Below, in pieces: positions 3,336-64,000 of a stretch of 64,000 nt of DNA (the stretch's first letter is position 1; the number at the start of each line of letters is the position of its first letter). The stretch is from Amoebophrya sp. A120. Lineage: Eukaryota > Protista > Dinoflagellata. Location of the stretch: NCBI GenBank assembly GCA_905178155.1, contig CAJINV010000001.1:4940747-5004746 (forward strand). Direction: 5' to 3'. Below the pieces are notes generated by a model. The model was given only the letters and a program-made list of their open reading frames with translations. It searched no databases and was not told the origin of the DNA. Position numbers and translations under genes: made by a program.

Positions 3336-6300
3336 TCAGACAAATTGGCGCTCGTCGTCCGGAAACAAGAAGGTTGTGGTATCGCTGCAAAATTTAACTT
3401 TGTCCTCCATACCGGGGGGCGGCGGACTTGTCATCAACATGGCCAAGTTCAGCGTCATCCCCACAAGGTCCGCTAACGCATCGGTAATGACCTCGCGCGC
3501 CGGTTTCCAGTCGCGAACGGTGATGGTCACCAACGTATTCTCTTCCTGATCTTCTTGCTCATCTTCTTGATGCTGTCGGTTCTCCTCCTCGTGGTCCTGC
3601 TGCTGCTGCTGACAAGAAGGTGACGAGGTGCCTGCGTTTTGATCATGGCGGCTTTCGTGGTGCTCGTTCTTGGAGGAACTTCCGGCTGACGTCGGGGGTG
3701 GACTTGTTCCCGTTTTCTCACGGTCTTGCCTCTGTGGTCGTCCACCTGCTCCGGTGTTTGTTGCAGCGGTGGGAGTAGTATTTCCACCCTGCTCGCCGTT
3801 GTTCTCGTGATCAGAATTGGGTTGTGGCGTTGTACTACTTCTAGAGCAGTCCTTGCTTTGACCAGGCATCGTCGTGCTTTCCTCGTGCGTCGGTGGCGAT
3901 GCGGTGCAATCCTCGCTTCTTCGTGAAGATGAAGAAGATGTAGATGATTCTTGTCGACGTTCTCGTTCTCCTGCCCCCGCTAAATTACTGCTGGTAGAAC
4001 TACTTTTCCCGCTTTCGTGCTCTTGTCTACTTCGCTTCGTCCTGTTTCCCTTGGAAGTTCCCCCCGTTTTCTTCTTTTCCTTGACATTGACGTACATTTT
4101 CCGCAACGGGTCCACTCTTGGAATCCGCTTGCTCGCCCGGTCCAGCGAGCCGCTGGTGCGAAACACCCGCTTCGCGCGCTCCATCGCCAACTCCGCGTCG
4201 TACTGCCGGCGCTGCTGCTCGTCTTGCAACACGTCATAGGCTTTTCTGACGCGCAGAAACGCTTCGTTGCTGTCCGCGGCCTTGTCCGGGTGGGTTTCCA
4301 GCGCTCTTTTTCGATACGCCTTCCGGATTTCCGCGAGACTCGCGTCCTGGCTGACGTTCAAGACCTCGTAGTGGGATTCTTCCACCGGCGGCTCGGGCGG
4401 TTCGCTGTTCATCCCGTTCGAAGAGGATGAACCAGCAGCAGACGAGGTCGAAGAACCACCGCCGTCGTTCAGCATGGAGTTCGGAATCAGCAGCCGGATG
4501 GTCTTATGCATTGCAAAAATGTCTGGGTCTGGAAGGCTGCGAACTTGTGATGCGTGGTGCGCATCCTGCAAAAATTTGTGTTGCATGGCTTGCAAAAGGC
4601 GCCTATTTCTGACCATTCTGAGAGGGCATTTCTCATGCGGAATGGGCATCACTAAGGGGCTGCACAACCTGTGATGCTCGGTTCTGCATTTCAATCTTGG
4701 CGGAGCTTGGAAAAACTGAATGACAAATCTCGGAATCTTCCAGACCCATACATTTTTACATTTGATAGGTCTTTTCGCTCGTGCACAACCGGCGGAAGTA
4801 CGCTGGGATCTTGGCCGGGTGGAAAAACGCCATGTGGTCCAAAACGATCTTGCCGGAGATCGAATTCAGCACGAAATTCGTGACAAAGTGCGAGCACTCC
4901 TCGAGGCTGTGCCGCGGTGCCATGTTCACCTGGGTCAGGTCGACGGCAGCCAGCAACTCGTCTCGTCCGGGCCGACCATACTCCGCTCTTCGGGGAATCT
5001 GGATTTGCTCCCCCGTGCGGGCGTCGATCGGGATGAATGTCCTGTCGACCAGAAACAGATGCAGCCGCGTCAGCTCCTCATCTGACGCGAAGAAATAGTC
5101 GCGCACGGACGCCGGGGCGCAGCTGCGGACGACGGTATTCGCGTTTCGCACGGCCGTACCACAACCCATCATCGCCCAGAACGCGCGGCTGGTTAAGTTC
5201 GGCAGGGCGAGGGCAAAGTCGGAAAAGTCGTCGGCGGCGGTCGTCTCAGCAGCGGTAGAAGTACTAGAAGGCAGTTCTGACGAACTCCTTGAGCCGTTGT
5301 CCTGTCGTGCCGAGGACGAGCAAGGTGAAACAGCACCATCTTCACCCGAGTTCTTTAGGATAATTTCTCCTCGTTCATCTTGCGTTGCTGTCGTGTCTTG
5401 TTCTACTAACATCGTGCTACTCGGCCGAGGAGTTGGTGCTGCTGTTTTGTTGTTAGCACTAGCAGTTCTTGTCTCTACTTCATCTGTAGTTAGCCTTTTT
5501 CTATTCCGTCGCTCTAGGAAAGCTTTGCTAGTACTCGTTCTTGTGTCACGTACTTTTTGTACTCCGGTGGTTAGCAGGTGCAGGAGTGGTGATGATGAGC
5601 ATGTAGTACTGGCAGTCGTAGCTGCATCATCATTTTTCTCGTTGGTGGCCCTGGTCGTCGTGGCAGCAGGTTCTTCTACTTGCGGCCCAGCAGTGTGCTG
5701 GTCTAGTAATTCTTGGGAATTTATTTCATACTCATCTGTTAAATCGGGCTCAACACTAGCTTGATGTTCGTGTTCGTGCTTTTTGTCCGAGGTGGAGGAG
5801 AAACACGACGAGTCATCTTTTACTTCGTCCTGAAATCTGACAACTTTTTTCTTTACTTCCTTACGCTTCTTACTTTGTCCATTGGCACTGCTTGGCGACG
5901 ATGCGAATGCCGCGGTGGTTCCCGAGGAGGGTCGGCACTCATTCGTCTCACTTGTACTTTCTACTTCCATGTCAACATCCACGTGCTCTTCTTCTTCACT
6001 AGTTGTAATGTCGGTCGAGACGGACGAATCTATTCGAGCTTGCTCCTGTGAGGCGGCTCGTGTAGTAAGTGGACCAGCGGCGCTAGCAGCAACACCCGGA
6101 TCACCTCCACTGCCTGCGCCGGGTCGTTTCTGCTGCTCTTCATCTTCTTCATCTCGTCCCGTGGTATAATTTCTGTTTTCGATAGTAGAAGAAAAGAGCG
6201 ATCCGAAGACTAGGAAAGCGTCTGAAAAGGAAGGTGCGACCTGGCTTCTCAACACACGAGGACCATCGGGTGGCGATATCAAGTGTAAAAATGTCTGGGT

Positions 6301-6971
6301 CTGGAAGAATGCAACTTGTCAGGCTGATTTTGGATTCTAAAAATATCTGTATTGCATGAGCAGCAAAGAAAGTCCAAGTTTTGCTACACAGAAAGAGCAT
6401 TTCTCATGCGGTAAAGGCATCAGGAAGCCCTCACAAAATCTGTGATGCTAGGGCATGCATCACAGACATCAGAAGTCATGCAAAATGTGCATGACAAACC
6501 TGGCAATCTTCCAGACCCAGACATTTTTACATTTGATAGGCGAAGACGAAGTACAACTAGGAAGATGCTGGTTCGTGGTCGTCGTGCTCATGTTTTCGTT
6601 TGCAGCTTCACCGGATTTCGAGGTATCAAATGTAAAAGTGTCTGGGTCTGAGAGAGTGCATGTTTGTCATGCTTGTCTGGCATGACTCTTAAATCTGTCA
6701 TGCACATTGCCCAAGAGACGTTTTTTTTCTGTCATGCGGAGACGAAGTTTGTCATGCATAATAGGCAACACCTACAAGCTCAGAAATTTATCATGCTGAG
6801 CCAGCACTTGTGGCCTCCTCATGCTACGCCACTCAGCATCACAAGTTTCCAGACCCAGACATTTTTACATTTGATAATCTCGTCGCTGGAACTACTAGAA
6901 AGATCGCCGTCAGAGTGAGAGTGTGATGTCGCAGTGGACGGATGTTTATTTTTCTTGTTTTTCTTTCTCAT
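3336..6971 (-). CDS. Large low-complexity DnaJ-domain protein interrupted by 2-3 introner introns (start uncertain)
   Basis: J-domain SHYEVLNV...YRKRALETHPDK...AYDVLQD. Removing 4505-4767+TSD joins SEKT|IRLL, and removing 6277-6538+TSD joins SCTSS|SPPDG, both in frame. The upstream ATG at 6971 is tentative. Confidence 0.75.
4505..4767. mobile_element. Introner family A (non-canonical intron)
   Basis: TIR TATGCATTGCAAAAATGTCTGGGTCTGGAAG / CTTCCAGACCCATACATTTTTACATTTGATA; TSD GGTCT on both sides; 268-nt removal restores frame. Confidence 0.92.
6277..6538. mobile_element. Introner family A
   Basis: ~31-bp TIR, TSD GGCGA, 267-nt removal in frame. Confidence 0.92.
6624..6876. mobile_element. Introner family A lacking a matching TSD
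   Basis: Family-A TIRs; flanks CGAGG and ATCTC do not match. Confidence 0.85.
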
Positions 6972-11800: not shown

Positions 11801-13176
11801 TTTTCGCGGTCTGTCACAAAGCTGGACCCGAACAGCTTTAGCGGCTCCTCTGGCGGGCGCTTGCGCCGGGGCCTTCTGCCTTCTTCTCTTGCAAGGTACC
11901 GCCATAGCGATGACGTCGTTACCTTATGATCCGCGATATACCGTCTCCATGCGTCCCCTTCAATCTGCCGGCGCAATACCCGTGCTGCCTGGCTGTTTGT
12001 CGTGCGGAGTTCCTCCCACCGCTTGATATCCGGGTGCCAGACGTTGTGCTCGGCAAAAGTTTTCTCCGTGTCCGGGTGCGCCAGCCTGCCACTGAGGGGG
12101 GCTCGGTACGCGCGAAACGCCATCTGGAGTTCTTGTAGTAATATGCCCCAGAGTCTGTCCCCTTGCTTGTTTTTCTTGGCGTCTTCCCACTCCGCCTGTC
12201 TGGCTGTCAATTTTGCAGCAATTTCGTCATTGACTCGGGCCCAGTCTGCTTTCGCCATCTTTTTCAGAAAAAACTTCTCCCCAAAATGTTCGCGCTCCCA
12301 CTGCGTGTTCTCGGGCACCGCCCTGTCAGCGAAGATTTTGCTGCATATCGGGATCGCTACTGCGGCATGATTGGAGAGGCCATCCGAGTCGACGGCCTTT
12401 CCCGGGTACCGCGCCCCTTCTTCAGGCGCCTCTGCGAATCCCTCCTCTAGAAACAGCTCAACAAGATTGTCCGGAATCTCTTCGCCCGGTGCGAAGAGAA
12501 CTTTATCAGGTTGCGTCCTGGCGAGCGGGAAGGTAACCTCGTCCGGGTGGAGGAGGTTCCAGAGGTCGTCTTTTGCTACCCAGTCGCAGAACCCCTTCCT
12601 CCATGTGCCAACATTGAAGTCCCCCAACAGGAGGCGCGAGGCCGGTGCCGGGCCGCGGTGTTCTGCGGCGGTAAGTTGCTTGAGCTGTGTGTACGTTGGC
12701 CGGGACCTGGGTGGCACATAAACACACAGCACCTCCAGGACCACTTTTCCTCCATTCCAAAATTGACATCCACAGACCTCCACTGCAGGCCGGTTTTTGC
12801 CGGGAGGCTTGCGTGCCTGGGCCAAGTTCTCGTCCGGGAGGGGGCGCACATCTGCCCCAAGCCCCATGCGGATGAGTATCGCGCATCCCCCCCCCCTATC
12901 TGCTTCGTCGCCCGCCCTTTGGGAGCTCGACACCAGGCGGTATTCTGGGAGGGACCTCGCAATCAGCTTCTTTAGCTCAGGCAACCCCATACGCACCTCG
13001 GTAAGCAGTACTGCGCCGGCGCGTTGGTCCCGGAGGTACTCCCTCAAGTATCTTCCCTTCGTCTGCAGCGAGTTGATGTTCAGATGCAGAAAAATGCACT
13101 TCTCGTCACCACCTCCTCTTCCCTTCTTTTCCTGGGCCCCCGTGGGCCCCGTCTTCTTGTTTGCGTCTTCTCTCAC
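8821..13176 (-). CDS. Retrotransposon ORF2: AP endonuclease, reverse transcriptase, RNase H and C-terminal Cys/His knuckle
   Basis: APE: HLNINSL, LLTEV, LLGDFN, SNH. RT: KTPGEDG, YRPISLL, GLPQGGIASPTLWN, FYADD. RNH: LATDGS, LVDS, FVPAHCGNDANELAD. C-terminal CPRC...HIRLC. Confidence 0.95.
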   Translation of the reverse strand: MREDANKKTGPTGAQEKKGRGGGDEKCIFLHLNINSLQTKGRYLREYLRDQRAGAVLLTEVRMGLPELKKLIARSLPEYRLVSSSQRAGDEADRGGGCAILIRMGLGADVRPLPDENLAQARKPPGKNRPAVEVCGCQFWNGGKVVLEVLCVYVPPRSRPTYTQLKQLTAAEHRGPAPASRLLLGDFNVGTWRKGFCDWVAKDDLWNLLHPDEVTFPLARTQPDKVLFAPGEEIPDNLVELFLEEGFAEAPEEGARYPGKAVDSDGLSNHAAVAIPICSKIFADRAVPENTQWEREHFGEKFFLKKMAKADWARVNDEIAAKLTARQAEWEDAKKNKQGDRLWGILLQELQMAFRAYRAPLSGRLAHPDTEKTFAEHNVWHPDIKRWEELRTTNSQAARVLRRQIEGDAWRRYIADHKVTTSSLWRYLAREEGRRPRRKRPPEEPLKLFGSSFVTDREKAQAWATWFNRKYLGEDEKSAENGVDTKPTKRADIAPELTPEVRNWLREEEPPDPVTTGEVQRALKVAKRNKTPGEDGVTNEMLLHSPATHAPLADLFSVILGGAKIPPMLCRAMVILLEKPGKDGSKATGYRPISLLPVAVKTLERVVLWRMQKTMRTQDAAGEELFSKSQHAFRPHVGCDQQIAEILHWTSTRLARGKHVGWISTDITGAYDSVRAGKLLEECRAMGVTPGCGRFIHAWMIHRSFRVRFGEDVSTYRECVSGLPQGGIASPTLWNVLIDRLPKRLREKNLGRDTDAEVHFYADDGVLMVAADSRGKLAKALRRLAAALREELRALGLSLDADKTKCLIFDGTLVGKEMQHRETRRKEFAQAPTPSGASCVDLPREATPLDGLPFEQVSVHRVLGVQVDHLLHFGPHVKAVTEKVRRRLPILKRLSSYSWGLEPYVFTQTIRALITQSVTWGVAGWGTYAPAPVLKRLNTDALNIAQRLAIGGVRTMRLEALRMLSLSTSIQNAYTRGVASLIDASLRGPETHLRNTLAARLSRTGRAKGGAGGGKWVEAASPLQIPVAKMDGAEENQILSAMGGDTTFAGYYYHKEGEGTGLRPAVDTSAPPCFNSYAPELGDEFGKFSEAGWISHGVRLLRKTGWCYDAVAPFRAVPMIEADNIEFETRDPDPTEIGNRGRKHVAAGGVLLATDGSFSSKTKQGAAATVVATLGRTKCSAYRRAKTSSAYAMERLGLERGLAELLWGASWEDKRNKQTEVLVLVDSLSLVERLANMLGTTLDGADQDVRLAEMLGQVAARYKSVRLVFVPAHCGNDANELADTICTHACAGEPTPQEVREMDPPCHVEIKAALVAQLEEEEAEAMRRLAEEGSRSGEIFHDLQLTRAKIRDIYRAARGEGRWLQKTLGDVAGATRFKKITEEGIRATNCPRCKDTMDSWQHIRLCHEYRHLGGLQSADEILDFLRTVRDAEFPISEHGSTTEEEEGGQEV

Positions 13177-13191
13177 CTTCTCCTTGAAGAG

Positions 13192-15201
13192 TCAATTTAA
13201 TGTTGCGGCCCGCCAATGCTCGGCTTCATAGAACAGCCCCAGCGCCTCCCCCCCATGGGCCCCATACCGCGACGCCCGGAGTTCGGTCGTCGGCAGCGTA
13301 GTAAACCCGGCGCACTGATGCTCTTCCGTGGGGGTGGACTGCTGTTCGGCTTCTGCGTTGTGCCATCGCGTCCACACCTTGACATCTTTTTTCAGAATTT
13401 GCGACGCAATAGTCAGCTCGAGTTCCCCTGCCCAGCTGCGGCGCTCCCGCAGTTTCTCGATGGCGTATGCATACGCTGCGCCGAAGGGGACATTGTCTGG
13501 CTTTTCTTCGTTTAGGAGGATTTGCTCGAAGGTTCTCCCCCCGATATGGGTAGTGTCTTGGTTGCCGGCGAGGAAGTCTACCACCGCATTTCGAAGTCCG
13601 TCCGGTGTCCAGGTGGTTTGTCCGTTCGTCTCCACGCTAAGCTGCCAGCAGAGACTGTTGTAGAGGCAATTCCCGTTGCTGCCGCACTCGCGAATCTCGA
13701 TGCGCGAGCCTTCTTCAAATAGCCCGTCCCTGATGTCTCGCAGCACCCACGTTGCCCGGCGGCTCATCGCCGCCTCGAGGAGGCGCCACGGGATCCCCAG
13801 ACTATCTTCGAGGTAGTTCGTAAATTCGTTGATAGTAGCAATTTCTGCTATTCGCGCCCTGTTTGTCTGGAGTTTCGTGCGGACATCCCGGATTTCTGCA
13901 TCGGAGGGTGGGTGGGCTATCCGGGCCCGCTCTTGCCATTTTGCTACTGTTTCCCCCAGGAGCTGCTTGGCCTCGCCTCCCTGTAGCCGTAGTTTCTTCT
14001 TAATGTGCGCCCCCATGGCCTGCGCATCGACCCAGATGGAGACTTCGCACATTGCGCGCTCTAAGTCTTCCTTCGTGACACCCTTGATATGCGCCTTCTC
14101 GGTTGCTGCTCGTGTCCGCTCCGTCCCAGGGGGTCGCTGGTCACCCCTGGCAGGCCTCTCTTGTTCCGACACCGGAGCAGTTTTGCGCTTGTTCTTAGTT
14201 GGCGGCGCGGCCTTTTCCGACTCGCTGCTTGAGCTGGAAGAAGATGATGAGCTTGAAGAAGACGACAACTCGATCACCTCCTGTTTCTTCTTCTTACCCT
14301 CCTTGCCGGGCGTTTTCTCCACCCGGAGCTTAGCAGTATTTGCCCGGGCCGCAGGCTTTTCGGGCGTTTTGCTGCTTTTCCTTTTTGTGGTCCTCGGCGC
14401 CGATTTTTCTGTCCTGCGCCTACTCCTGCTCCGAGCGCGCTCGGCCACTCGGGAGGGCTTCCGCGTTTCTCCGTACCGTTCCTTGGGGACGTGGTCGTAG
14501 ATGAACTTGGACACGTTTTTCCTCAAGATATTTTTCATATCCTTATGGCGAACTCCGTATTTGTGGAAAGCTTCCGCGCATAGGAAACGCCCCATGTCGT
14601 TGCGATTTGCCATCCAGACCGTTTTTGCTCGGCGCTGTAGAAAGTGCCGCAACTCCCATTCCGCGACCCAGTTACTTCCGGAATGCTTGGGCGCAGTGCT
14701 ACTGGATGTTGTCTCGCGACGACCGCTTTCCTGCTCCCGCTGCTGTTGCTTGTCTTTCCCCCGCCCAGACGGAGTGCGGTCTCGAGAGGTGGAGCGACGT
14801 CGGGATATTCGGCGAGTCTCGCGTGATCGGGAGCGGGATCTTGCAGTGGTATCCCGAGCCCGAGAAAGTTCCAGCTTTCTGCTCCTGTGACGTCTGTCAA
14901 TGTCGGTTTGTACTTCTCCCGGCGCGAGGATCGGGTAGGAGTAGGGGTGGAGTTGAGGTACGAAGAGCGGGTTTGTAGTTGGGTGCTGGTGGTGGCGCCA
15001 TAGGTCCGATGCAAAATTGGGGGGTTGGTAATGTTGGTGTGGTGTGGTAGAGTTTGTTGGCCGGCGTTGCGTGCGGGTTCCCGATGCTGACACACAGTGT
15101 GGCTGCTGTTGTGCCAGGTCCTGGATCACCTGGATCGCCCGCGCGACCAAATCCTGTTGCTGCGCGAAATCCATCTGCGGATGTTGCTGCGGCTCCACCA
15201 A
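13192..15201 (-). CDS. Retrotransposon ORF1: basic Arg/Ser/Lys-rich region plus C-terminal OTU-like cysteine protease domain
   Basis: GNCLYNSL (catalytic Cys motif), LRNAVVDFL, WAGELELTIASQIL and terminal EHW (His) match the OTU family pattern. Confidence 0.8.
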   Translation of the reverse strand: MVEPQQHPQMDFAQQQDLVARAIQVIQDLAQQQPHCVSASGTRTQRRPTNSTTPHQHYQPPNFASDLWRHHQHPTTNPLFVPQLHPYSYPILAPGEVQTDIDRRHRSRKLELSRARDTTARSRSRSRETRRISRRRSTSRDRTPSGRGKDKQQQREQESGRRETTSSSTAPKHSGSNWVAEWELRHFLQRRAKTVWMANRNDMGRFLCAEAFHKYGVRHKDMKNILRKNVSKFIYDHVPKERYGETRKPSRVAERARSRSRRRTEKSAPRTTKRKSSKTPEKPAARANTAKLRVEKTPGKEGKKKKQEVIELSSSSSSSSSSSSSSESEKAAPPTKNKRKTAPVSEQERPARGDQRPPGTERTRAATEKAHIKGVTKEDLERAMCEVSIWVDAQAMGAHIKKKLRLQGGEAKQLLGETVAKWQERARIAHPPSDAEIRDVRTKLQTNRARIAEIATINEFTNYLEDSLGIPWRLLEAAMSRRATWVLRDIRDGLFEEGSRIEIRECGSNGNCLYNSLCWQLSVETNGQTTWTPDGLRNAVVDFLAGNQDTTHIGGRTFEQILLNEEKPDNVPFGAAYAYAIEKLRERRSWAGELELTIASQILKKDVKVWTRWHNAEAEQQSTPTEEHQCAGFTTLPTTELRASRYGAHGGEALGLFYEAEHWRAATLN

Positions 15202-17586: not shown

Positions 17587-20500
17587 CTAACTATTGCGCA
17601 ACACCAGGTAGGGGTCGAAGGTCGAGGCGAGGGACGGGCCGCGATCTTCCGACGTGTTCGCTCCCGACGAGGACGTAGTGCGCCTGTCCCTCGCTTCGCG
17701 CCGCGCCTCCACGTTAACGAAGCTCGCAAAGGGCTGTGCAGTCGGTTCCACTTCACTGCCATCATCTTCCGACTCATCAAGGTCTCCCGGTGCCTCTCCG
17801 TCCCACAGGGAGCAGCTCGACTCGCTCATCTCGTCATCTTCGCGGTCGTTGTGATGTTGCACGCTCAGCCCCCTGAAATCGTCGCACAGGAAGTCAACAA
17901 CTCCTGGGATTGGCACACTTTCAGTGTCATCCCCGGACGCGCCCGCGTTGCGCTCGCGGTCTTCGACTCGCTGCGCGGCCAGCCTCTCGTCGTCCTCGTC
18001 GTGTTCAGCTGTCATCCCTTCCGGCATTTTCTTCGTCTGCTCCGCGGACGATTCAGCGTCCAACTCCTTGTCCTGGCCTAGCATTTTTATCATCTCCTGA
18101 ATGCTGCTTCGTAAATTCTCCTCGGTGTCCTCAGTGGCCTCAGGTGGTCGCATGCAGAGCATTGAGCATTTTCTCTTGGCCCCGTCAATGACATTGCGCT
18201 CCCAACCGCAGAGCTCCCCGAGAAGGTCCGCCACCTCGATGGTTTGCTGGTTTTCGCAGATCATTACATACAACGATCCCGGTAGATTCCCGATGTGGTC
18301 GCAGACCCGCACGAACCACTCCACTTGCGCCGGGAGGGTGCGTGCGTGCTCCACTACATCTATGATCACCACCGCCCGTCCGCATCTACCCTCCAGCTCC
18401 AGCACTGGGAGCATCAAGGATTTTGTCCCCGTTGAAAAGGCATTCGGGTCCCCGGGGCTCCTGCGCCGGCCCCGAAGATCCGCGCTAGCGGACGATGCCG
18501 CCGCTGAAGTAGCCCGAGCCGGTGACGAAGCCGCCCCCTGCTTTCCGGCTGGGGCAGACTGGCCGTGTCGCTTCCCATTCTTTTCGCGGTCCTCACGCGC
18601 CTGGATGATGGCCTTTCTCTCCTGCTCCTTCCGCGCTAGTGCGGGCAACAGCCCGTCCTCGAAGACCCGCGTGGTGATTCCCCGCCTGACATCAAATCCC
18701 CGCTCCCGCATCTGCGGCACCAGCTCCGAAGACCGATATCCGCCGAAAACGTGGACCATGCGACCGGCCAGTTCCGGCTGCAAAACGCGGAAAATGGTAC
18801 CGCCGAAGGCGTTATCCAATGTAAAAATTTCTGGGTCTGGAACCTTGTGATGCAAGAAAGCGAATAGTGAACTCACTATAATGCGCTGCCAAGCATGACA
18901 AGTTTTTTCCACGGCTCTGAGTTGCGTACTCCGCATGAGAAACTGCGTTTTTGTATGACAGGGAGGAGGAGCTCTTCGCGGCCATGCAACACAGAGTTCA
19001 GAGTCATGCCAGACAAGCATGACAAGTCTTGCAATCTCCCAGACCCAGACATTTTTACATTTGATAGGCGTAGGCGGGCTTCCGGCGATCGAGACCAGTG
19101 GACGCGAGGTCTGTGTCGTTCTCAGGTCGGTGATATCAACTGTAAAAGTGTCTGGATCTGGAAGAGTGCCAGACTTGTCATGCAGGTTTCCCATGACCCA
19201 TGAGGTCTGGTATGTAGGACATAGCATGACAGATTCTGCGAGAGTTCTATCATGCCTATTCTGCATGAGAAACTGCCTCTCGATTAGGTCAAAAGTGGGC
19301 AGCTTTTGGTAATCATGCAACACAGATTTTCACATGATTCAGATTTAGCATGACAAGTTGCAATCTTCCAGACCCAGACATTTTTAGACTTGATAGGTGG
19401 GGGAAGCGAGCGTTCTCATCGATGTTCTCAAACTGCGGCACGAACAGGTCAACTTTGTGTCGCCCTCCCTTTTTCTTCGGCGGCCTGTTCCGGAAGAGAA
19501 GCGTCTCGCGTCGCTCCTGTGGCAAATCTACCACAGCACGCTCTAGCTGGTTCCACTCCGTTTCATCCGGGCACGCGCAGCTCTTGTCCTGAATCTGATG
19601 GAGAGACTGGATTTTTGTGATCGCTCCCTGCAGGGCTTCACGCTGGTTGTGTTCCGCGCGCAGCATCAAGAGACACTGCCTCCACGTGTCAACGCACATC
19701 GTGATCAGCCCACCGCCATCCAGTTCATCTGTCGCATTATGTTCATCTTTCTGCGATTTGCTGCCGTTCCTGGAGACTTTTGATAATAATATCTCGTCGG
19801 ACTGAGTCATGAACGTGTTGCAGCTCAGCGCTCTGGTCGTGTCCTCGTCGTGATCATCCCCTTCGGAGTCCGGCCTTGGCGGCGGGTCAAAAAGTACGGC
19901 TTTCCGCAACATTTCCTTGAATTTAGTATGGCCTTCGCGTTCCGCTTCCGCAGTGTCGCCAGGTGAAGAACCTCCATCCTGCGCCGTCGTACTCGACGCT
20001 GGCAGCTTATCAAGTGTAAAAATGTCTGGGTCTGGAAGATTGCCAGGTTTGTCATGCATATTTTGCAATAGACAATAGACACCCATAATAGCTCGTAGAA
20101 CCCTGTCATCTTCCACCAAGTGAAACATCAATGGTGAGGTGCCCAGGGCCCCTGGAGGTGAGAAACGAGGGTGGCAAATATAGTCGACCATACCAACTGG
20201 TCAACCAGGAAATGAGGAAGTGGGTAAGGAACACAAATGTCCCGGGATAACAAAAACTGAATATCCCGCACAACCTCTGCCAACCACTGCCCATGCATAT
20301 TTTGCATAACCCATGATGTCTGTAATGCCTCCTGGCCGACCATCACAGATTTTTCAGGGGCCTTCTGATGCGTATTCCGCATGAGAAACGCGCTCTCCGC
20401 GTAGCACAAACTGAACTCCTCTTGCTGGTCATGCAATACAGATTTTTTTTACCTTTCAAAGACAGCATGACAAGTTCCAACCCTTCCAGACCCAGACATT

Positions 20501-21426
20501 TTTACATTTGATACAGCTTGCCTGTGCGGATGAATGGAGAAAAATTCGTGTGAACGAAACGCCCGAGCTCGTGCCGATCGCGGCGCGAAAGCCGCTGCAT
20601 CATCTGCAAAAGCCGGACCTCCCTTTCGTAGATGCACTTTTCCGGCGATTCCGATTTCGGCAGGGATATCGCAGAATCTGGCTTCTTGCTGCCTTGCGAG
20701 CTTGTGTCCTTCCGATCCAGGGACGACGTCCAGATAGCTTGCGACGGGCTGGTGCCGCAAGAGCTCGCGGACGAGACTATGACCTGCTCAAAGTGGCCCA
20801 GCAAATCGTCCCGCGGCCCGACCATGTTGGCGAGTTCCTCTACAAAAGCGTTTTCGTTCATAAGAGAAAAAGTCTTCTCGCAGTCCCCGCTGTTGAGCAT
20901 CACGATCCCGCAGTCCCGGTTTATTTTTTCCTGCTCGTCATCTCCCATGCTATGAAGATCACTTTTTGAACAAGAGTGATCGCCTTGCTGATCTGGACCA
21001 AAATCTTCGAGAGGGGTTGGGTCGTGTCCTTCTTGGCGGCCGCTACGAAAGCAGAGAAGTCCCGCTTTTTTGCCGAGACCGGATGCGAATGCGTCAGAAG
21101 TAGTATTTCGGCCATTAGTACTGCGAAAGCAAGAAGGCACTTTCATCCCAGGCATCTTCATGCTGGAAAGCGCCTTCGGCATCAAACTCGACATGCCGGC
21201 GCCACGCTGCTTCCTGCTGCCTTGTTTCGGCGTCTCGTCTTGCCCGGGGGAAGACGACTGCGAGGATGAGCGTTTCAAGTGCCCTATCACTGCACTTCCA
21301 GAGGACGACGACGAGGCGGTGGACGTGCTTGCCGGGACGATTGGAAAAGGCTGAGAACCATCAATGTCACTGGCTACAACGCCTGCACCTGCAGCGCTGC
21401 CGACCCCGCTGGTTTTCTTGGCATTT
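17587..21426 (-). CDS. Hypothetical protein segment with 3 introner introns; may be the C-terminal part of the GAF protein
   Basis: Joins RTGKL|PASST, RFPH|RPEND and KPAY|AFGGT are all in frame after removing element+TSD. Confidence 0.65.
18813..19066. mobile_element. Introner family A
   Basis: TIRs, TSD GGCGT, 259-nt removal restores frame. Confidence 0.92.
19134..19395. mobile_element. Introner family A
   Basis: TIRs, TSD GGTGA/GGTGG, 267-nt removal. Confidence 0.9.
20008..20513. mobile_element. Introner family A carrying a nested insertion
   Basis: TIRs, TSD CAGCT, 511-nt removal restores frame; twice the normal length. Confidence 0.92.
20068..20291. mobile_element. 224-bp nested insertion with 15-bp TSD (probable truncated retroelement)
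   Basis: CATGCATATTTTGCA at 20053-20067 and 20292-20306; homologous blocks recur at 59215-59365. Confidence 0.8.
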
Positions 21427-24192
21427 TTATTTTTTGCGCAGCAACGGCATGTGGTGCCCCCATTTTCTCTGAAGGGCTTCTGTGCTGTCCTTCTCCGAGT
21501 CCGTGTCTTCGTCGGCAACCGGTGCCCTTGCAAGGGGAGTGGATTCCTGCCCCATGTCAACTACAGTTTCCCTATCCTTTCGGGCCGAAGCTAATTCTGC
21601 CAGCTCCGCCTTCTCAGACTCCTCTTCTGCATTCAGAAGAGCCAGCAGAAGTTCGCGAAATTTCATTCCGGAAGCACACAACTTCCCCTGATTCACGCTG
21701 GGGCCCAAGATCTTGTTACCGTGCCGATCGTAAAACAGGACAGCTGGCAGAAAGAAAGTGGGTCCGAGCACCCTCTTCGCGAGCGCGAAGTTACGATCCA
21801 CATCTACCTCCGCAAAAACCACTCGCCGACGATGATAAGCGAGGCTCACGGCATAATAGAATTCGTGAAACATGGCGCACGCCTGACACAAGTTGTTGCA
21901 AAACAGCACCGCCTTGATTATTGGCGGTCCCGCTTCCGAAGTTATACCTCCATTGAAAGGAGTCGTCGGCGGAGCCGGCGCATGAAGTGGCCCCTTCGGT
22001 GGTGGAGCCGGATTGTCGTCGTAATGGATGCCAACATCTCCAGTGTGGCGGTTCTTGTACCCCGACTTGCAGTTCGCCGCGCATTGCCCTCGGGTAGATG
22101 AGCACGCAGCGCTGCTGGATGAAGCGCCGAGGAAATTTCGGAGGTCTGCCTTGCTACTAATGGCGCAAGCTGCATCCTGTGATCGGTCCAGCGCAGCGCC
22201 GGAATCTTGGCCCTGGTCGCCGCGCTTGTCGAGCACAATGCCAAGTAGCTGGTGCGCGTCAAACCCGCCATCTGCAGTCGTCGGGGATTCCTCTACGTGG
22301 TCTATCGGAAGAGCAACTTGTGGGAGGTTGGCGTTCAAAGCGTGGCGCGGTGAAGACGTATTTCCCTCCGGCTGCGGCCCCTGGGTGGGCACACTCGACG
22401 AGGACGGGGACCCCACAGCTGACACGGATCCTCCTTCTGCGGCGGCAGCTGCGTCACCAAAACGCCGGCGGCCATAAATGATGATGTCCTCTAACTGGCG
22501 AAGCGAACTGATTTCAATAATGCTGCCTTCATCGTTCAAATTCAATTTGATTTTTGGCACCACGCCCTCAGCTTGTTTTTCCGAAGCGGCCGACGCAGCG
22601 GCGTCCGGATCGTATCTCTTCACAACGCAGAACCCTCTCGCTGTTTTCTTTGTGCCCGGAATGAAATTTTGCTCTGCAAAGAAGTCCAATTCCTCCTCCA
22701 TCCCCGTCACCTTAGTCGCGAACTCCGCTTCACCGTGATCGCTCCTGATTTGGTTTTCTAGCTGTAACTGCGTGTCGATAGCGGCGGCGTGGTCCCGCGT
22801 CTTTTTTTCGGTCTCGTTGAACGTGTAGGGAAAGTGGACCACACTGCTCAGATTCTCCTCTTTTCGGTGCGGGCGAGTCTGGCATGCGGCTGGGTGCCAG
22901 CAGCAAAAAATTGGGCTGCCGTCTCTTAGTGTTGCCGAAAACACGAGTGCGCGCCCTTGTTCTGCGGAGGGTCGCGAAATGCTAAAGATGGCCTGGCGGG
23001 TCGCTTTCCAGTTCTGCACCTCGTCCAATATATCGGACAAATGCAACTTTTGTGATGCTGGAAGTGGTTCTTCATCTTCTTGTTCTTTTGCAGCCTCCTC
23101 CGCAGCGACAGCGCTAGCACTTCCACTTGATGAGGCTGCTGCACTAGCCCCAGCGCGCCGTTTAGCTGCCTCCTCGTCAAGCGCACGCATCTCGCGGGGG
23201 TCCATCTGCAGCTTGAGCTTGTGCTTGGCCTTCATTTGTTCGTCAGCGCTTCCTGTCCGTTCTTGCGCTCCTACAACGCGCGTCGAGGCAAGCAGTTTCT
23301 TCGCCACGCGGTTGCAGTACAAAACCTTTCCAAACTCATCCGGAAGACGAACAGCCGAACTGATGCTTCTCTGATCCTTTTCTCCTCCCAGTCCTTCCGC
23401 TCCCGTAGTACTGTAGGAGGACAATCCAATGTGCCCCGCCCGCGTGCCGTTGTTTGTGGCACCTGCGTCACCCAGACCATTATGGTCGAGTTCGACATCG
23501 TGATCGTAGAGCTGCTTTTCCAGCTCGTTGCCCTGTCGCAGGTCGATCAGAAAGCATGCATTGCGCAGCATGTCCAGATGCTTTTCGTCGCGGACCGTGG
23601 CGCGTCCGAGCGACGCGGCAACGATATCCGCGAAATTACACAACAACAGCGCCGCTTCGTAGGTGATGTCGACGCGCGGGACGTAGTCGATCACGCAGAG
23701 TGCCCCGAGTCGGACCCCCTCCACGATGATGGGGCAGCCGCAGTAGAAGCGGATCTCTATATCTGATTGCACTATCGGGTTGTTCTTGAAACGCGGATCC
23801 AGTCGAGCATCGGGGACATACAGAATTTCAGGGACGTCGCTGAGCAGCGTGTGTGCGCAGAAAGACTTCTGCCGGGTCATTCCACAAGCGCTGCCGGAGA
23901 GCCCGATGTTGGACTTGAACCACTGGCGCTTTTCGTCGATGATGGTCGTCAGAACGATGGGCACCCGAAACAATCCTTTGACCACTCTTGTAACTTCGTC
24001 AATCTCCAAGTCCGGCAAGTCGTCAAGGAGGAGACTGTAGAGGTACCGCAAGCGATCCTGCTCATTATCCGGGAGCCCTACGCCGTAGATTCGGGTACCG
24101 GCAGCATCGAAGCAGGAATGTCGCTCCTCCTCCTCGTTTGCCTCGTTTATCAACTCTATCTCCCTCTTCCGCCCTTCTAGTACCTGATCCAT
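21427..24192 (-). CDS. GAF-domain protein with possible PAS-like segment and thioredoxin-like CxxC domain
   Basis: GAF: QWFKSNIGL, SFCAHTL, VPDARLDPRFKNNPIV, IRFYCGCP, LGALCVID. Trx-like: LFCNNLCQAC...VFAEVDVD...LPAVLFY. Confidence 0.85.
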   Translation of the reverse strand: MDQVLEGRKREIELINEANEEEERHSCFDAAGTRIYGVGLPDNEQDRLRYLYSLLLDDLPDLEIDEVTRVVKGLFRVPIVLTTIIDEKRQWFKSNIGLSGSACGMTRQKSFCAHTLLSDVPEILYVPDARLDPRFKNNPIVQSDIEIRFYCGCPIIVEGVRLGALCVIDYVPRVDITYEAALLLCNFADIVAASLGRATVRDEKHLDMLRNACFLIDLRQGNELEKQLYDHDVELDHNGLGDAGATNNGTRAGHIGLSSYSTTGAEGLGGEKDQRSISSAVRLPDEFGKVLYCNRVAKKLLASTRVVGAQERTGSADEQMKAKHKLKLQMDPREMRALDEEAAKRRAGASAAASSSGSASAVAAEEAAKEQEDEEPLPASQKLHLSDILDEVQNWKATRQAIFSISRPSAEQGRALVFSATLRDGSPIFCCWHPAACQTRPHRKEENLSSVVHFPYTFNETEKKTRDHAAAIDTQLQLENQIRSDHGEAEFATKVTGMEEELDFFAEQNFIPGTKKTARGFCVVKRYDPDAAASAASEKQAEGVVPKIKLNLNDEGSIIEISSLRQLEDIIIYGRRRFGDAAAAAEGGSVSAVGSPSSSSVPTQGPQPEGNTSSPRHALNANLPQVALPIDHVEESPTTADGGFDAHQLLGIVLDKRGDQGQDSGAALDRSQDAACAISSKADLRNFLGASSSSAACSSTRGQCAANCKSGYKNRHTGDVGIHYDDNPAPPPKGPLHAPAPPTTPFNGGITSEAGPPIIKAVLFCNNLCQACAMFHEFYYAVSLAYHRRRVVFAEVDVDRNFALAKRVLGPTFFLPAVLFYDRHGNKILGPSVNQGKLCASGMKFRELLLALLNAEEESEKAELAELASARKDRETVVDMGQESTPLARAPVADEDTDSEKDSTEALQRKWGHHMPLLRKK

Positions 24193-59076: not shown

Positions 59077-59136
59077 TATGAACTGCAAATATGTCTGGGT
59101 CCGGGAGATGGCGAGATTTGTCATGCTAGTCTGGCA
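59077..59136. mobile_element. Left 60 bp of a family-A-like introner, interrupted by an insertion; right end not found in the window
   Basis: TATGAACTGCAAATATGTCTGGGTCCGGGAGATGGCGAGATTTGTCATGCTAGTCTGGCA. Confidence 0.8.
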
Positions 59137-59365
59137 CCTTGATATTCCCGATTCACACTCGGGGGGACTGGAACTTTCGCGAGACCAAACGAGATGGCAA
59201 GCGAGGTCCGCGCGCCCCCCCTGGAGGTGAGATGCGAGGGTGGCCCTGTATTGTGATCTGCAATCTGCATTAGACCACACAGGAAATGAGGAAGTTGGAG
59301 AAGGATCCTAGATGATCATGAGCGACACTATGGAACGCTCCAACAACCTCAGCCAACCACTGCCC
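59137..59365. mobile_element. Insertion homologous to 20068-20291 (extends further right; end unknown)
   Basis: Shared colinear blocks CCCCTGGAGGTGAGA..CGAGGGTGGC, CAGGAAATGAGGAAGT and ACAACCTC.GCCAACCACTGCCC. Confidence 0.75.
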
Positions 59366-61002
59366 TCGCATTCACAAGAGACCTGCCAAGGCAGACTCAA
59401 CTCCGGAGAATCTTCCCGAAGCCGACCTCTAAGTTCGGCCTGGTCGGCAACGAGGCAATGTCCTCAGGGGCCGTTAGGAACCTCCCGAAACAACCGTCAA
59501 CGAGCTCCAGCGCCAGGAAGCCGCTGACGAAAGAAACGCACAGACTGTTCCCAGTGGCAAGAACAGAAAGGCAGGGACATAGGTGAACCGACAGTGACAC
59601 CAACTCGACCAAGGTAACCCAGAGTTCCGGACCCGGGGAACACTGGGGACCACGCGGCAGAAGCGCAGCACAAAGACGCCTGAAGTGTTCCCAACCGCCA
59701 GTCAAGCAGCAGCCAAAAGTCAACGGAGGCAGCAGCAGAAGCCACTCAGGTACTCCACCGAAGACGAGAGGAGCCGCAAGACCCGGAGCAAGCTCCGACG
59801 GCCACAACAGACGCTTCTACTGTCGCAACACCACTGGGGACGAAGACAGAGGGCAAGGCAAGAGCCTCGCGCAACGGGAATTTCCCACCGAGCCATGTCA
59901 ACGACCTCACATGAGAAGGCGCACCAGGACGGCCACGAGAGGGGATAATCTAAGGCACCCCGCATTCAGCCCCGTCTACACCACCGAGGACGACGAGCAT
60001 CTCTCGTCATTATGTTCACCGGATCCATCGTCAAAATTTCACGTCGTGCACGCCGCTCTGCCTCGAGGCATTGTCACTCGTCCGCTAGACACACTCCCAC
60101 TCCACTTCGATGGAAGGCCAGACATCGCGACAACATAGCACAGCAGGGTTAGGAGTGGCTGTGCTGAGTCGCGTCTGGAGAGGGAAGCTTTAAGGAGCAC
60201 CAGGCTGCCCGATTGTCCTATTTGGGCGAGTTTTGTTGTCGCCCCCGACCGCCCCCCGTCGCGGTAGCTGGCATCACTTCTGCTCGGGGAAGCCGTCTAG
60301 CCCTCGGCCATGGCAGAGGCTTCTGTCTGTCAATCGCATACCGGGCGTCGCTTGTGTACGCGGCTAAGGTTTCCGAAGTTGCTGCGTGTCGTCTTTCGCT
60401 CGTAGCAGATAGGTTTGTAGTAAGTATGGAACTGTAAAAGGCAAGGCAGAAATGTGCTTGATCCTGATGCGAGAAGGCTGGAATTAGAGCGGCCATGGCT
60501 GAGCATGACACGACTTTCACTACATCTTCCGCAATACATGAGATGTCAGCATGACAAACCGATGTTTTTGTAGTTTGATTTTCTATAACGCATCACTTGA
60601 CATCCAAGAAAACAGAAGGAAGAGGAAGCTAGAGAAAGACCGAGCTTCTGCCTTGACTTACGCCTCAGATATTTTGTTGGATCCATCCGGCGATGCCGTG
60701 GTGGAAGCTTGCCCCCTCCACCCTGTTTCAACACTACAAGAACTTAGTGCGCCGGCCCACACAATTCGAAGTGATATACGTTGGGCTCCTGCGCTCATGC
60801 TCGTCGTCAGCGTCGATAGCTGCGAGCAACACTTATCTCATCTCCCGGATCCGTCGCCGCTCGCTCTCGACGGCACTGGCCTCCGCTCGCATCCGCCGCA
60901 TGGCTCCGCCTAGGTGTGGCCGCGCGACAGCAAGGTCAGAAAGTCTTCGCGCCGCAACCTCGTAAGCCATTCCCACATCGACACTTCTCGTGTACAGCGG
61001 CA

Positions 61003-61375
61003 GAAACTAGGCGCGGAGCCGCAAGTAGTGAGTGTCTGTTTGTCTTCAGACACGACCTGAAACTGGAAAACTGCTTCGCTGAGCTCGAGTGCGAGGTAAG
61101 CCCGGGAACGTAACCCGCCGCGAAAACTAGGCGTGGGGCCGCAAGTGACGCACGCATGTTTGTCTTCAGACACGAGCTGAAAATGGAAAACCACTGCGCC
61201 GGACTCGAGGACTACCTGGGAACTTAGCTCGCACCCCTGGCGAGGGCGAGCAGAAACTAGGCGCGGAGCCGCCAGTAGTGAGTGTCTGTTTGTCTTCAGA
61301 CACGAGCTGAAAGTGGAAAACCACTGCGCCGGACTCGAGGACAGCCTGGGAACTTGACTCGCACCCCGGGCGAGG
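61003..61375. repeat. Three-copy ~120-130-bp degenerate tandem repeat
   Basis: AAACTAGGCG.GG.GCCGC...TGTTTGTCTTCAGACACGA.CTGAAA.TGGAAAAC occurs three times. Confidence 0.85.
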
Positions 61376-62092
61376 ACGGGGGACGCGATTTAGCATTAGA
61401 AGAGGGCCTTGCTGTGGGGCTGGCAGTCGATGTCCATCAAGGCCGCGCTTGTTGCTGGATAATCTTATGGTCGCGCTCGGGATAGGAAAGCTGGCGCGTA
61501 GTGAGGTCTGTTTACTGAGGAGATATACGTTCATGTTATGCAGATCGCCGATCTGAAAAACGCATGACAGAAACACGCCAAGCACAGGGAGGCAAGGCCG
61601 AACAAGACACAACCGAGAAATAAGAAAACGGAAACCCAATACGCAAGTGGAAAGCGACATGTGCACGGACCTCACCAGCAGCTTTGAGCAGACATATCTT
61701 GCCCCAGTTGACGACGCGGAGGATGTGTATCGGTTCTCCGCGTTGCACTACCAATTGCACCCAAAAGGAGGGCGCCTCCCGTCCTGCAGCTGTACACTAG
61801 CATAGACACGTTTGCCGTAGCAACGGGATAGACACGTCTTCATTTTTTCACTGCGAGGAGTCGCCGACGGGCGCGTCCGCTTTTAAATCGCTCCTTGTCC
61901 GCTCGTGATTGCGCTCAGCTCTTGGGCTCGGTCTGGATGCGTCGGCTGTCATCTTGTCCTCATTTCAAGAACCAGATGTGTTGCCAGTGGGGTTACATTG
62001 AAGTCTCTCACGCGGAGACCAAGACAGCTCCGCTTGCGGCCACCGGGCTTGCGCCTGCGAAGAGTCTGACCCGGCTTCCGTACGTGGCAGGA

Positions 62093-62562
62093 CCTAGGAT
62101 TGGCCTGCGCCGCCCCTTGCGGGGCACTGGCTATCTCGGTGCTAATTTTTGAACCGTCGAAGCCCATGCGCAACCCGGCGACCCAAATGACCGCCGCGCC
62201 AGGGAGGCAAAGAAAAAAACAAAAAAAGGAAGGCGCAAACGCGCAAGGCCAACAGCCCAGGCCCCCCAGGCACAGAGGCATCGCGCCTATTTTTTTGCCT
62301 ATTTCGCGCCTAATTCCCGGGCTATTGGTTTTCGCAGCGAAAAAAAAAAGTCGCCGAAATTAGACAAAAAATAGGCAAGCACGGCCGGGGAATCAGACAA
62401 AAAAATAGACAGGAAATTAGGCAAAAAAATAGATACAAAATTAGACAAGGAATTAGACAAAGAATTAGCAAGGAAATAGGCAAAAAACCAAACACGAAAA
62501 CCGTAGGATAAATAGCACAGAAATAGGCGCGAAATGGCAAGGGGAGGCGCCGCCTAACTAGG
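62093..62562. mobile_element. ~470-bp MITE-like element with A-rich internal repeats
   Basis: Imperfect ~55-bp TIR CCTAG...GCGCC.CCCCTTGC...CTAT.TC.GTGCTA; AATTAGACAA-type repeats inside. Confidence 0.55.
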
Positions 62563-62825
62563 AACACGGCGACTTGTTCCCAGTTCACAGCAAGCGTTCA
62601 ACTTTAGGTCGTAGGCGGCTCGCCCAGGTGAAGATGTATAGTAGCAGACGCAGTCAACTTAAGTACAAGGGAAAGAGACATCGCTTAATCGAACCTACTC
62701 AGTGCCTTGAGGTCGTGCTCAGTGCTTTGAGGTCGTAAGCGGCTCTAATTATCAGAGACCGAGAGCACCGCCAGAAGGGAGCCCGGCTAGCCGCGTCTCG
62801 CGGATTTACGTCCACGACCATCTTT

Positions 62826-64000
62826 TCATGACCCGACTGCAGAAGGCCGGGGGCTGGTTAGCGGGCTGCCGTCACCACCCTGCGTCGCGGCCCCTTCGAC
62901 GTCGTACTCCTCCATCGGCACCACGACGACTTCTATTGATTCCGGTGGCGCTCCCTGCACAGGCGGGAGGCTAGGCTCGTTATGGGAGGCGCGTTGCGTG
63001 TTCATTTCGTCGATCTCGCTGTCCTGCGTCGCGACGTGACATAGGAACTCACTAATTGCCTGCGAGGGAGCATCGAAGGGGTTCGGAGCAACGTTCTGCG
63101 GATCCGATAGCAGCGCATCGATGCGACTGATGTCGATCAACTCGTGTAGGCCGTCATCGCTTGTACTGGCTCCCACCTCGTCCCGGAACCCTTCGTGGGA
63201 TCTCGTGATTAATGCCGCGAGAGCCCGCGCTTCTTCGTCGTCAACTGGCCGCTCTTCCCGCTCTTGGCGGGCCGGGGAGGGTGGAGGCCATTCGTCTTCC
63301 CCCAGGCCTTCTGGCCCATGAACGAGGGTCAACACTTTTCGCGCCACTCCTACTTTGTCCGCCAACCCGTGCTGGAAGTTCGGCGGCTGTATCTCGTCGC
63401 CCTTTAGGAGCTTCACCATGGCGGCGCAGCGGAAACTCACGAGGTGATGCACTATGGCCGTCCACCCCACGTCGGCCTCGCTTTCTTCTAGCGTCTCGAA
63501 CTCGTCCTCGTCCCCCTTGCGCTTCCGCTTGTTGCTCGTTTTTAGCGCGTCTATTTTACACCTACACTTTCCGCAATACAAGCGACCCATGTGCCACCAG
63601 CAACCCAATCCGGCTATTAGGTCGCTGCCGTCCCCTGGCAGTAGACTGAACGCCGTGCGTGCCCGGGCGGCATCGAGAGATTTTAGGAGGTCACGGGCAC
63701 ACCCCCACTCCGCAATTAGGGTGGAGCGCATGGAGGATGACGGGTGCGATTCCGCACGCTCTTTGAGGTCTTCACGGAGGGCTTCGCGCATCAGGTGGCG
63801 GAGCTCGTTCGCCACCACATGCACCGGCACCGTCGCGGAAAACCACCTGTCCAGGGAAATTGCGGGCAGGGCCCCCACGAGGTTCTTGGAAAGCGATTGC
63901 GCCAGATCCACCTCCCGACTTAGCGACACATCGGAGTGGCTTGGCACCCACTGCAAAAGAATCCGCACGCCGGGGAGCTTGCTTTTGATGAAGGCAAGTT
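62826..64000 (-). CDS. C-terminal part (RNase H end and Cys/His motif) of a second non-LTR retrotransposon ORF running off the window
   Basis: LQWVPSH RNase H motif, YCGKC...HHLVSFRC. Confidence 0.65.
   Translation of the reverse strand, partial: LAFIKSKLPGVRILLQWVPSHSDVSLSREVDLAQSLSKNLVGALPAISLDRWFSATVPVHVVANELRHLMREALREDLKERAESHPSSSMRSTLIAEWGCARDLLKSLDAARARTAFSLLPGDGSDLIAGLGCWWHMGRLYCGKCRCKIDALKTSNKRKRKGDEDEFETLEESEADVGWTAIVHHLVSFRCAAMVKLLKGDEIQPPNFQHGLADKVGVARKVLTLVHGPEGLGEDEWPPPSPARQEREERPVDDEEARALAALITRSHEGFRDEVGASTSDDGLHELIDISRIDALLSDPQNVAPNPFDAPSQAISEFLCHVATQDSEIDEMNTQRASHNEPSLPPVQGAPPESIEVVVVPMEEYDVEGAATQGGDGSPLTSPRPSAVGS

Follow-up and report, generated by a model that had tools for sequence, protein, structure and literature searches.

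The site-specific long interspersed nuclear elements (LINEs) SLACS, CZAR, CRE and NeSL-1, found in protists and nematodes, are inserted into spliced-leader (SL) genes and carry a restriction-like endonuclease (RLE) C-terminal to the reverse transcriptase (RT), and in R1 the target-site duplication (TSD) measures 14 bp. R1 resides in 28S rDNA, and two further site-specific LINEs of its clade, TRAS1 and SART1, reside in telomeric repeats (PMC1919474). According to the passages on them in PMC6719617 and PMC1919474, which cite Christensen et al. 2000, Tx1L and Tx2L of Xenopus laevis insert into the DNA transposons Tx1D and Tx2D. The introners of Amoebophrya are multicopy elements with terminal inverted repeats (TIRs) and a 3-5-nt direct repeat, and are excised from mRNA (PMC7789003). 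Here we describe two introners interrupted by LINE sequence in a 64,000-nucleotide stretch of the Amoebophrya sp. A120 genome (G000:C1:4940747-5004746, hereafter the window; DNA past its end was also read), together with related copies elsewhere in the genome. We put at about 85% the probability that a clade of LINEs with an apurinic/apyrimidinic-type endonuclease (APE) uses target-primed reverse transcription to insert in this genome at the box TTGT(C/A/G)ATGC, which occurs in many copies in otherwise unrelated TIR/introner families.

Insertion 1 lies in the introner at 20008-20513. In self-BLAST against an uninterrupted minus-strand copy (6277-6538), bases 1-60 of this introner matched 6538-6479 and bases 285-506 matched 6493-6277, and the two alignments overlapped by exactly 15 bp on that reference. 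Given this overlap, 20068-20291 is an insertion of 224 bp between two copies of CATGCATATTTTGCA, which bears out the original prediction, made from the letters of the window, of a 224-bp insert with a 15-bp TSD after base 60. The second introner, at 59077, is likewise broken after base 60 (59136), as the same prediction had held and as comparison with its intact relative at 6624-6876 confirms. The colinear blocks that had been noticed in the two inserts were recovered by self-BLAST in the same register: bases 82-108 of insert 1 are 93% identical to 59218-59244 (bases 82-108 of insert 2), and its last 22 bases (203-224) match 59343-59364.

Insertion 2 had been taken for a short, diverged copy ending at 59365, and this part of the prediction was wrong. 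It is a LINE of 17,238 bp that runs past the window end and is flanked by a perfect 15-bp TSD: a second CATGCTAGTCTGGCA stands at G000:C1:5017121, 13 kb past the window end, and is followed by the missing introner part and the right TIR. The second TSD copy and the right TIR had been expected beyond position 64000, together with a flanking repeat GCTGC; the right-hand repeat proved to be CCTGC, and the flanking repeat of this introner is thus imperfect (GCTGC / CCTGC). On the minus strand, insertion 2 holds ORF1 (1088 codons) upstream, then ORF2 (2273 codons) and, downstream, a 3'-untranslated region (3'UTR) of 3.7 kb ending at 59137; judged from its sequence, it is an apparently intact, full-length LINE. 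A 5'-truncated copy elsewhere in the genome (L066) is 99% identical to insertion 2 from the 3'UTR into the ORF, and both parts therefore belong to one element. The 3'UTR itself is variable in two places. Repeats of ~123 bp at 61000-61370 differ in copy number between insertion 2 and L066; TRF did not report them, and they are visible as off-diagonal BLAST matches only. A 460-bp A-rich low-complexity stretch at 62099-62558, built on the 12-bp unit AATTAGACAAAA, is not found in L066.

A genome search with both inserts, a check that the original prediction had proposed, returned at least 40 matching places, which fall into three 3'UTR lineages: F1, which contains insert 1; F2, which contains insert 2 as well as sub-lineages and a 2.2-kb internal-deletion derivative; and F3, 76% identical to F1 and present in at least 12 near-identical copies. 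Each lineage has one constant end, the 3' end, and one variable end, the inserts ranging from 52 bp (L057) to 17.2 kb at full length. Two F1 copies, L006 (277 bp) and L007 (344 bp), extend beyond the right end of insert 1 into common sequence. Aligned with longer copies, the 224-bp insert is a simple truncation, colinear with their 3'UTR, and the short interspersed element that had been offered as an alternative was accordingly rejected. We verified a TSD of 15-16 bp for 13 events, every one equal to its own local target. Loci with such a TSD are L001, L006, L007, L012, L020, L021, L036, L045, L057, L025, L026 and L059; the two window inserts have 15 bp. At a single locus, the same picture would arise if the supposed insert had from the start been part of a longer parental DNA transposon, and if it had been lost from the short introners by deletion between 15-bp direct repeats. 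We regard this as having a negligible chance of being right, given that the interior is a LINE with an SL at one end, that the repeat differs between loci and always equals the local target, and that the lengths vary from one fixed end.

We compiled explicit junction lists of the copies to establish where the constant end falls. It lies 8-10 nt after TTGTNATGC. Among independent F2 loci, 11/12, and the window copy as well, have the box (with at most 1 mismatch) exactly 10 nt before the junction, and chance is therefore excluded as the cause of the fixed spacing; in F1 the box stands 7-12 nt before 14/17 junctions, and F3 has the same geometry at the variant TTGYNTTGC, shifted by one base. Insertion at nucleotide 60 of family-A introners, as originally proposed, is merely the commonest case of a rule that consists in a fixed distance from the TTGTNATGC box: the constancy of the target stood, its restriction to one nucleotide of one family did not. 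At least four TIR/introner families serve as hosts, at least three of them with TIRs unrelated to that at 20008; the TIR family of 20008 is hit in both arms (L002 being in the opposite arm), and relatives with another interior are hit too, at internal boxes among other places (L009, L043). The box occurs 75 times in the window, on both strands, against 2.4 expected, and the target is therefore very abundant. As separate observations, box positions and introner matches recur in the window at an offset of exactly 4526 bp between ~32880-36080 and ~37410-40600 (32886/37412, 35944/40470), a pattern that indicates a putative ~4.5-kb tandem duplication of a gene segment with its introners. At L023 (G000:C3:724223-727359) two F3 copies stand in tandem, the second directly after the TSD copy from the first, and the site regenerated by the TSD has been used again. 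Finally, in L042-L046 and L048 (e.g. G000:C15:160609, C5:1283787) a 58-106-bp piece of the F2 3'UTR, starting at insert base ~27, lies inside another repeat family with flanks alike between loci; these pieces may represent a separate short retroposon that borrows the LINE 3' module.

The junction lists also bear on how the copies came to share a position. One possibility is that an ancestral LINE fragment, or several, landed in an introner by chance and that the composite was then amplified by DNA transposition of the introner. Introners are indeed multicopy and mobile (PMC7789003), and the family-C arms around the F3 copies are nearly as alike as the inserts themselves, but the same introner family carries inserts that differ in truncation point and TSD (142, 224, 277 and 344 bp in F1; 371, 553 and 654 bp in F3), one LINE lineage occurs in differing introner families and arms, and one introner subtype holds different LINE sub-lineages (L032 vs L037). 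Introner families, flanks, TSDs and truncation points thus all differ between copies, which makes descent from a single composite very unlikely. Another possibility, which we find hardly credible, is random insertion followed by selection that keeps only the copies in introners, where they are spliced out. Excision of the composite intron at 20008 (see below) is what this would lead one to expect, but survival bias would scatter the sites along the introners, while the junction is found at one nucleotide relative to the box and in one orientation; moreover, some targets give no sign of a coding exon, such as 59077, where no frame spans the site, and L003, whose flank matches no recognised introner family. 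The box-tied junctions, the local TSDs and the variety of hosts therefore rule out all three of these readings: insertion at random, the amplification of one composite, and a deletion between repeats.

Table 1. Coordinates in the window of the features of both insertions and of their empty-site references.
Feature	Position	Strand	Basis and remarks
Uninterrupted family-A introner; empty-site reference for insertion 1	6277..6538	-	Self-BLAST
Uninterrupted introner of the type struck by insertion 2; empty-site reference	6624..6876	+	Sequence comparison
Family-A introner, a TIR element with 5-bp flanking repeat CAGCT, holding the nested insert	20008..20513		Sequence reading, self-BLAST
Target box TTGTCATGC, insertion 1	20049..20057	+	Box count in window
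TSD of insertion 1, left copy, 15 bp, CATGCATATTTTGCA	20053..20067		Self-BLAST
5'-truncated LINE copy of lineage F1, 224 bp of 3'UTR; element 3' end at 20068	20068..20291	-	Self-BLAST, genome copies
TSD of insertion 1, right copy, 15 bp, CATGCATATTTTGCA	20292..20306		Self-BLAST
Second introner, left arm, 60 nt; its TIR is that of family A, its interior that of 6624-6876	59077..59136		Remainder at G000:C1:5017136-5017389
Target box TTGTCATGC, insertion 2	59118..59126	+	Box count in window
TSD of insertion 2, left copy, 15 bp, CATGCTAGTCTGGCA	59122..59136		Right copy at G000:C1:5017121-5017135
Full-length LINE of lineage F2, 3.7-kb 3'UTR	59137..62825	-	Blocks conserved in F1/F3; ~123-bp repeats near 61000-61370
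C-terminal part of the 2273-aa ORF2 (RNase H end and tail)	62826..64000	-	ORF runs on to G000:C1:5010393

The original prediction had suggested that the longest copies be extended in search of an RT and an endonuclease, and both are present in insertion 2, the endonuclease being of the APE type and not an RLE. ORF2 (2273 aa, no stop) has the order OTU, CCHC finger, APE-fold endonuclease, RT, RNase H. Pfam detects OTU (1.2e-9) and RVT_1 (E 1.6e-5, 25.1 bits against a gathering score of 29.6); it did not directly detect the endonuclease and the RNase H of ORF2, which were shown by fold search and motif alignment. Phmmer with ORF2 returned 272 matches, the best of them outside the genus being APE-RT-RNase H proteins. 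Among 1.8 billion representative proteins we found three relatives of ~30% identity, all from Amoebophrya sp. AT5.2, and many remote APE-RT-RNase H LINE proteins; identity to any protein outside Amoebophrya is 29% or less, and phmmer against PDB sequences gave nothing meaningful. We modelled the region before the RT with AlphaFold2 (AF2) from a 4-sequence alignment (model m091cf90017c9; mean pLDDT 55, core 70-80). Foldseek with this model retrieved TDP2, L1-EN (1vyb, 8sp5), TRAS1-EN (1wdu) and ExoIII with a probability of 1.00 and E about 1e-7, and ORF2 retains the catalytic motifs of this fold (N, E, D-N, D and H). The CCHC finger directly upstream of the endonuclease is invariant in the 4 aligned homologues, and the RNase H motifs (TDSG, E, D, H..D) are conserved after the RT. 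ORF1 (1088 aa) gave no Pfam match and no usable ESM Atlas match; its paralogues stand 4-5 kb upstream of ORF2 paralogues, and ORF1 therefore belongs to this type of element. Intact ORF2s in the genome comprise one autonomous F2 copy, insertion 2, and six paralogues at ~30% identity.

The window contains another apparently intact LINE, at 8821-15201 on the minus strand, in which Pfam clearly detects APE-RT-RNase H in ORF2 and OTU in ORF1. Its RT is 22% identical to that of the introner-homing LINE over 264 aa (BLASTP), and neither a spliced leader nor a perfect box was found at its ends inside the window.

These proteins matter for the question of which activity chooses the site. A different activity, such as the introner transposase or a host nuclease, could break DNA at the box and leave 3' ends ready for use by the LINE ribonucleoprotein. 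Such a role would agree with the presence of the box in unrelated introner families and on both strands, as expected of a protein-binding site, and with the position of the conserved bases, 8-19 nt from the first nick, whereas APE-type endonucleases usually read a few bases around the nick. We nevertheless consider it improbable: the catalytic motifs of the APE fold are all retained in an open frame of 2273 codons, the 13 verified events combine regular 15-16-bp TSDs with precise junctions, and the orientation relative to the box is constant. Endonuclease-independent L1 insertions typically lack TSDs and come with deletions, which also counts against ready-made breaks.

The 5' end of the element identifies its template. 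The full-length LINE and the 2.2-kb derivative both begin with CCGTAGCCATTTTGGCTCAAG, the dinoflagellate spliced leader (DinoSL), and seven genome matches to the 5' module stop no more than 2 nt from the first SL base, five of them exactly on it. The presence of the SL at the 5' end of the element therefore means that the template was a trans-spliced mRNA, that is, an RNA intermediate. The same reasoning is applied to DinoSL-bearing retrogenes, in which a relic leader on the genomic 5' end shows a reverse-transcribed trans-spliced mRNA (PMC5585692, PMC7789003). In the 2.2-kb non-coding copies, which derive from the LINE by internal deletion, its SL, 5'UTR and 3'UTR are preserved. At the other end, the 3'UTR blocks common to the lineages hold hairpins in which 6/20 predicted pairs covary, and F3 variants carry a compensatory swap, GTCGGG/CCCGAC to GTTGGGGG/CCCCCAAC, in a 3'UTR hairpin; the predicted hairpins would agree with a LINE that has no tail and whose RT identifies the element by its 3' end.

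Two further observations concern the 5' end. The last ~270 nt of the 5'UTR together with the SL are 77-84% conserved over many loci (G000:C1:5840466-5840756 and at least 15 others), one of which stands 4 kb upstream of an ORF2 paralogue of 30% protein identity; a 5' module so much better conserved than the ORFs suggests a common promoter/UTR module or recombination. In the 17.2-kb LINE, 27 extra nt (G000:C1:5017094-5017120; L070:9095-9121) lie between the spliced leader and the right TSD. Their sequence repeats the target on both sides of the first nick, taking in part of the TSD and the ~17 nt that follow, less a small deletion. An origin from staggered nicks was rejected because these cannot yield such a copy, and 5' transduction was ruled out because the spliced leader separates the 27 nt from the element body. 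They may stem from a switch of template, to introner RNA or DNA, while the 5' end was being joined.

The introner at 20008 lies in a coding exon of a large minus-strand gene with a GAF domain upstream, and removal of 20003-20513 restores an open frame of 136 codons on the minus strand (the exons were searched separately, and the frame across the joint is from translation alone). In run X1, one contig connects 20002 to 20514; two neighbouring introners are likewise missing from this run, and the exons match without differences. The composite introner is thus excised in a transcript-like contig, X1 being taken as RNA because three introners are absent while the exons of the same strain match exactly. 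Along with the TIRs, the 5-bp CAGCT repeat, the many copies and the open frame, this excision identifies the copy at 20008 as an introner. The notion that introners offer the LINE a safe haven, also part of the original prediction, accordingly holds for the composite at 20008 and could not be extended to 59077, where no open frame spans the site. In the same run, a second contig (record 4; 494 letters, depth ~11) matches the F1 insert (20069-20292) and then enters other sequence. It differs from the insert at two positions, 20177 and 20178, both A>C, and would represent a different F1 copy in transcripts, provided that X1 is RNA.

We propose that the LINEs insert as follows. The element would be transcribed and its mRNA trans-spliced to the dinoflagellate spliced leader. 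The ORF2 protein would then nick the strand that carries the box, at a point 8-10 nt beyond it on the 3' side and as a rule after GCA, and cDNA would be primed at the exact, tail-less 3' end of the RNA, behind the conserved 3'UTR hairpins. The cut in the second strand would fall within the box (TTGT^CATGC), 15-16 nt further upstream, giving rise to the TSD; we infer that the two nicks occur in this order. Partial reverse transcription would leave 5'-truncated copies such as the 224 bp at 20068, complete copies such as the 17.2 kb at 59137 would retain the SL, and the 2.2-kb internal-deletion derivatives would be mobilised in trans. The insertions would be tolerated because the boxes sit in introners that are removed by splicing.

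Several points weigh against this proposal. That the endonuclease of the element itself reads and cuts the box, perhaps helped by the CCHC finger, is inferred; the AF2 model on which the endonuclease fold is based has a mean pLDDT of only 55 (core 70-80), and the RVT_1 match of ORF2 is under the Pfam gathering score. Three junctions (L020, L017, L035) have no good box, and a full-length derivative, L064, has a TSD of 7 bp only. An autonomous partner was identified for F2 and not for F1 or F3. On the side of splicing, the RNA label of run X1 is a guess, RNA runs X9-X11 gave almost no coverage of 18500-22000, and neither a location in a coding exon nor excision could be demonstrated for the introner at 59077.

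A bolder extension, tentative and in our estimation rather doubtful, is that no introner family can do without the TGTNATGC box, as a cis-element for mobilisation or for the splicing of these non-canonical introns, and that a whole Amoebophrya-specific LINE clade has specialised on it by means of its conserved CCHC finger and APE. The clade has at least seven intact ORF2 paralogues (~30% identity), at least three 3'UTR lineages and relatives in AT5. If the extension were true, we would be dealing with a stable nesting on three levels, gene, introner and LINE, in which the LINE has an mRNA-style SL cap and the insertions stay spliceable. LINE-bearing introners might then be those catalogued for strain A120 as 'non-LTR-derived introners', a class listed for this strain (PMC12130899). 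Apart from that extension, it is speculation on our part that LINE-in-introner composites contribute to the class. Such composites can mislead automated classification of introner origins.

The wider interest of these LINEs lies in their target and their template. Introners are the best current model for the origin of new spliceosomal introns, and a LINE clade that homes on one short box across introner families would mark the box as a conserved functional site, for which the endonuclease and finger of the LINE would be a natural probe. Amoebophrya has the most aberrant introner set known, and its mobilisation machinery has not been identified (PMC7789003). To the safe havens of site-specific LINEs a new class would be added, sequence that the host removes from its RNA. 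With its SL trans-spliced mRNA, the LINE or its relatives are candidates for the RT source of dinoflagellate SL-bearing retrogenes. There is also a technical interest in an insertion system that would be guided by 9 nt, precise to the single nucleotide and free of integrase.

In terms of known systems, the element is a non-LTR (long terminal repeat) retrotransposon by its RVT_1 match, its phmmer relatives and the BLASTP match to the other LINE of the window, and of the APE type by a predicted endonuclease/exonuclease/phosphatase fold that lies N-terminal of the RT and has the catalytic residues. TSDs, frequent 5' truncation, a constant 3' end and the lack of terminal repeats (the 5' end being the SL and the 3' end unique) are the hallmarks of target-primed reverse transcription, and independent insertions at the same target nucleotide and in one orientation in F1, F2 and F3 are those of a site-specific LINE; with the fixed 3' end, the variable 5' end and the APE, RT and RNase H, they uphold the mechanism that had been predicted from the window. 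An RLE-type LINE (R2, NeSL, CRE) was rejected on the APE fold N-terminal of the RT and the RNase H motifs C-terminal of it, and a Penelope-like element on the architecture APE-RT-RNase H and the lack of a GIY-YIG match in Pfam.

SLACS, CZAR, CRE and NeSL-1 resemble the LINE described here in being site-specific with a spliced-leader link, but here it is the mRNA of the element itself that bears the leader, the APE fold is N-terminal of the RT and the target is the introner box. DinoSL retrogenes share the relic SL at the genomic 5' end, with the difference that the retro-copied mRNA is here the LINE's own. With the R1 clade it has in common an APE-type endonuclease, a precise 3' junction, no need of a poly(A) tail, staggered cuts that leave a TSD of more than 10 bp and a multicopy, 'safe' target whose regenerated sites allow tandem insertions (here L023). 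It is unlike them in that the target is a transposon/intron and not a host multicopy gene or telomere, and in its size (17-kb element, 1088-aa ORF1, 2273-aa ORF2), this comparison being one of features. We found no description in the literature of a LINE that targets introners, and in this the original prediction that no such hyperparasite had been described holds for introners as the target; Tx1L in Tx1D, as presented in the passages cited at the outset (PMC6719617, PMC1919474), is nevertheless a precedent. Like Tx1L and Tx2L, the Amoebophrya element is an APE-type LINE that targets a sequence within a multicopy DNA transposon, with composites as the result. Here, unlike there, the target is a 9-nt box found in several TIR families that are unrelated to each other and function as introns; the TSD measures 15-16 bp, OTU and RNase H are present and the RNA is SL-capped. 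Sequence similarity to Tx1, a group of the L1 clade, is remote, and the likeness is one of features. Site-specific APE-type LINEs (R1, TRAS, SART, Tx1L) are thus known, as is the use of a DNA transposon by Tx1L, and what is new is the introner as target and the SL-capped template.

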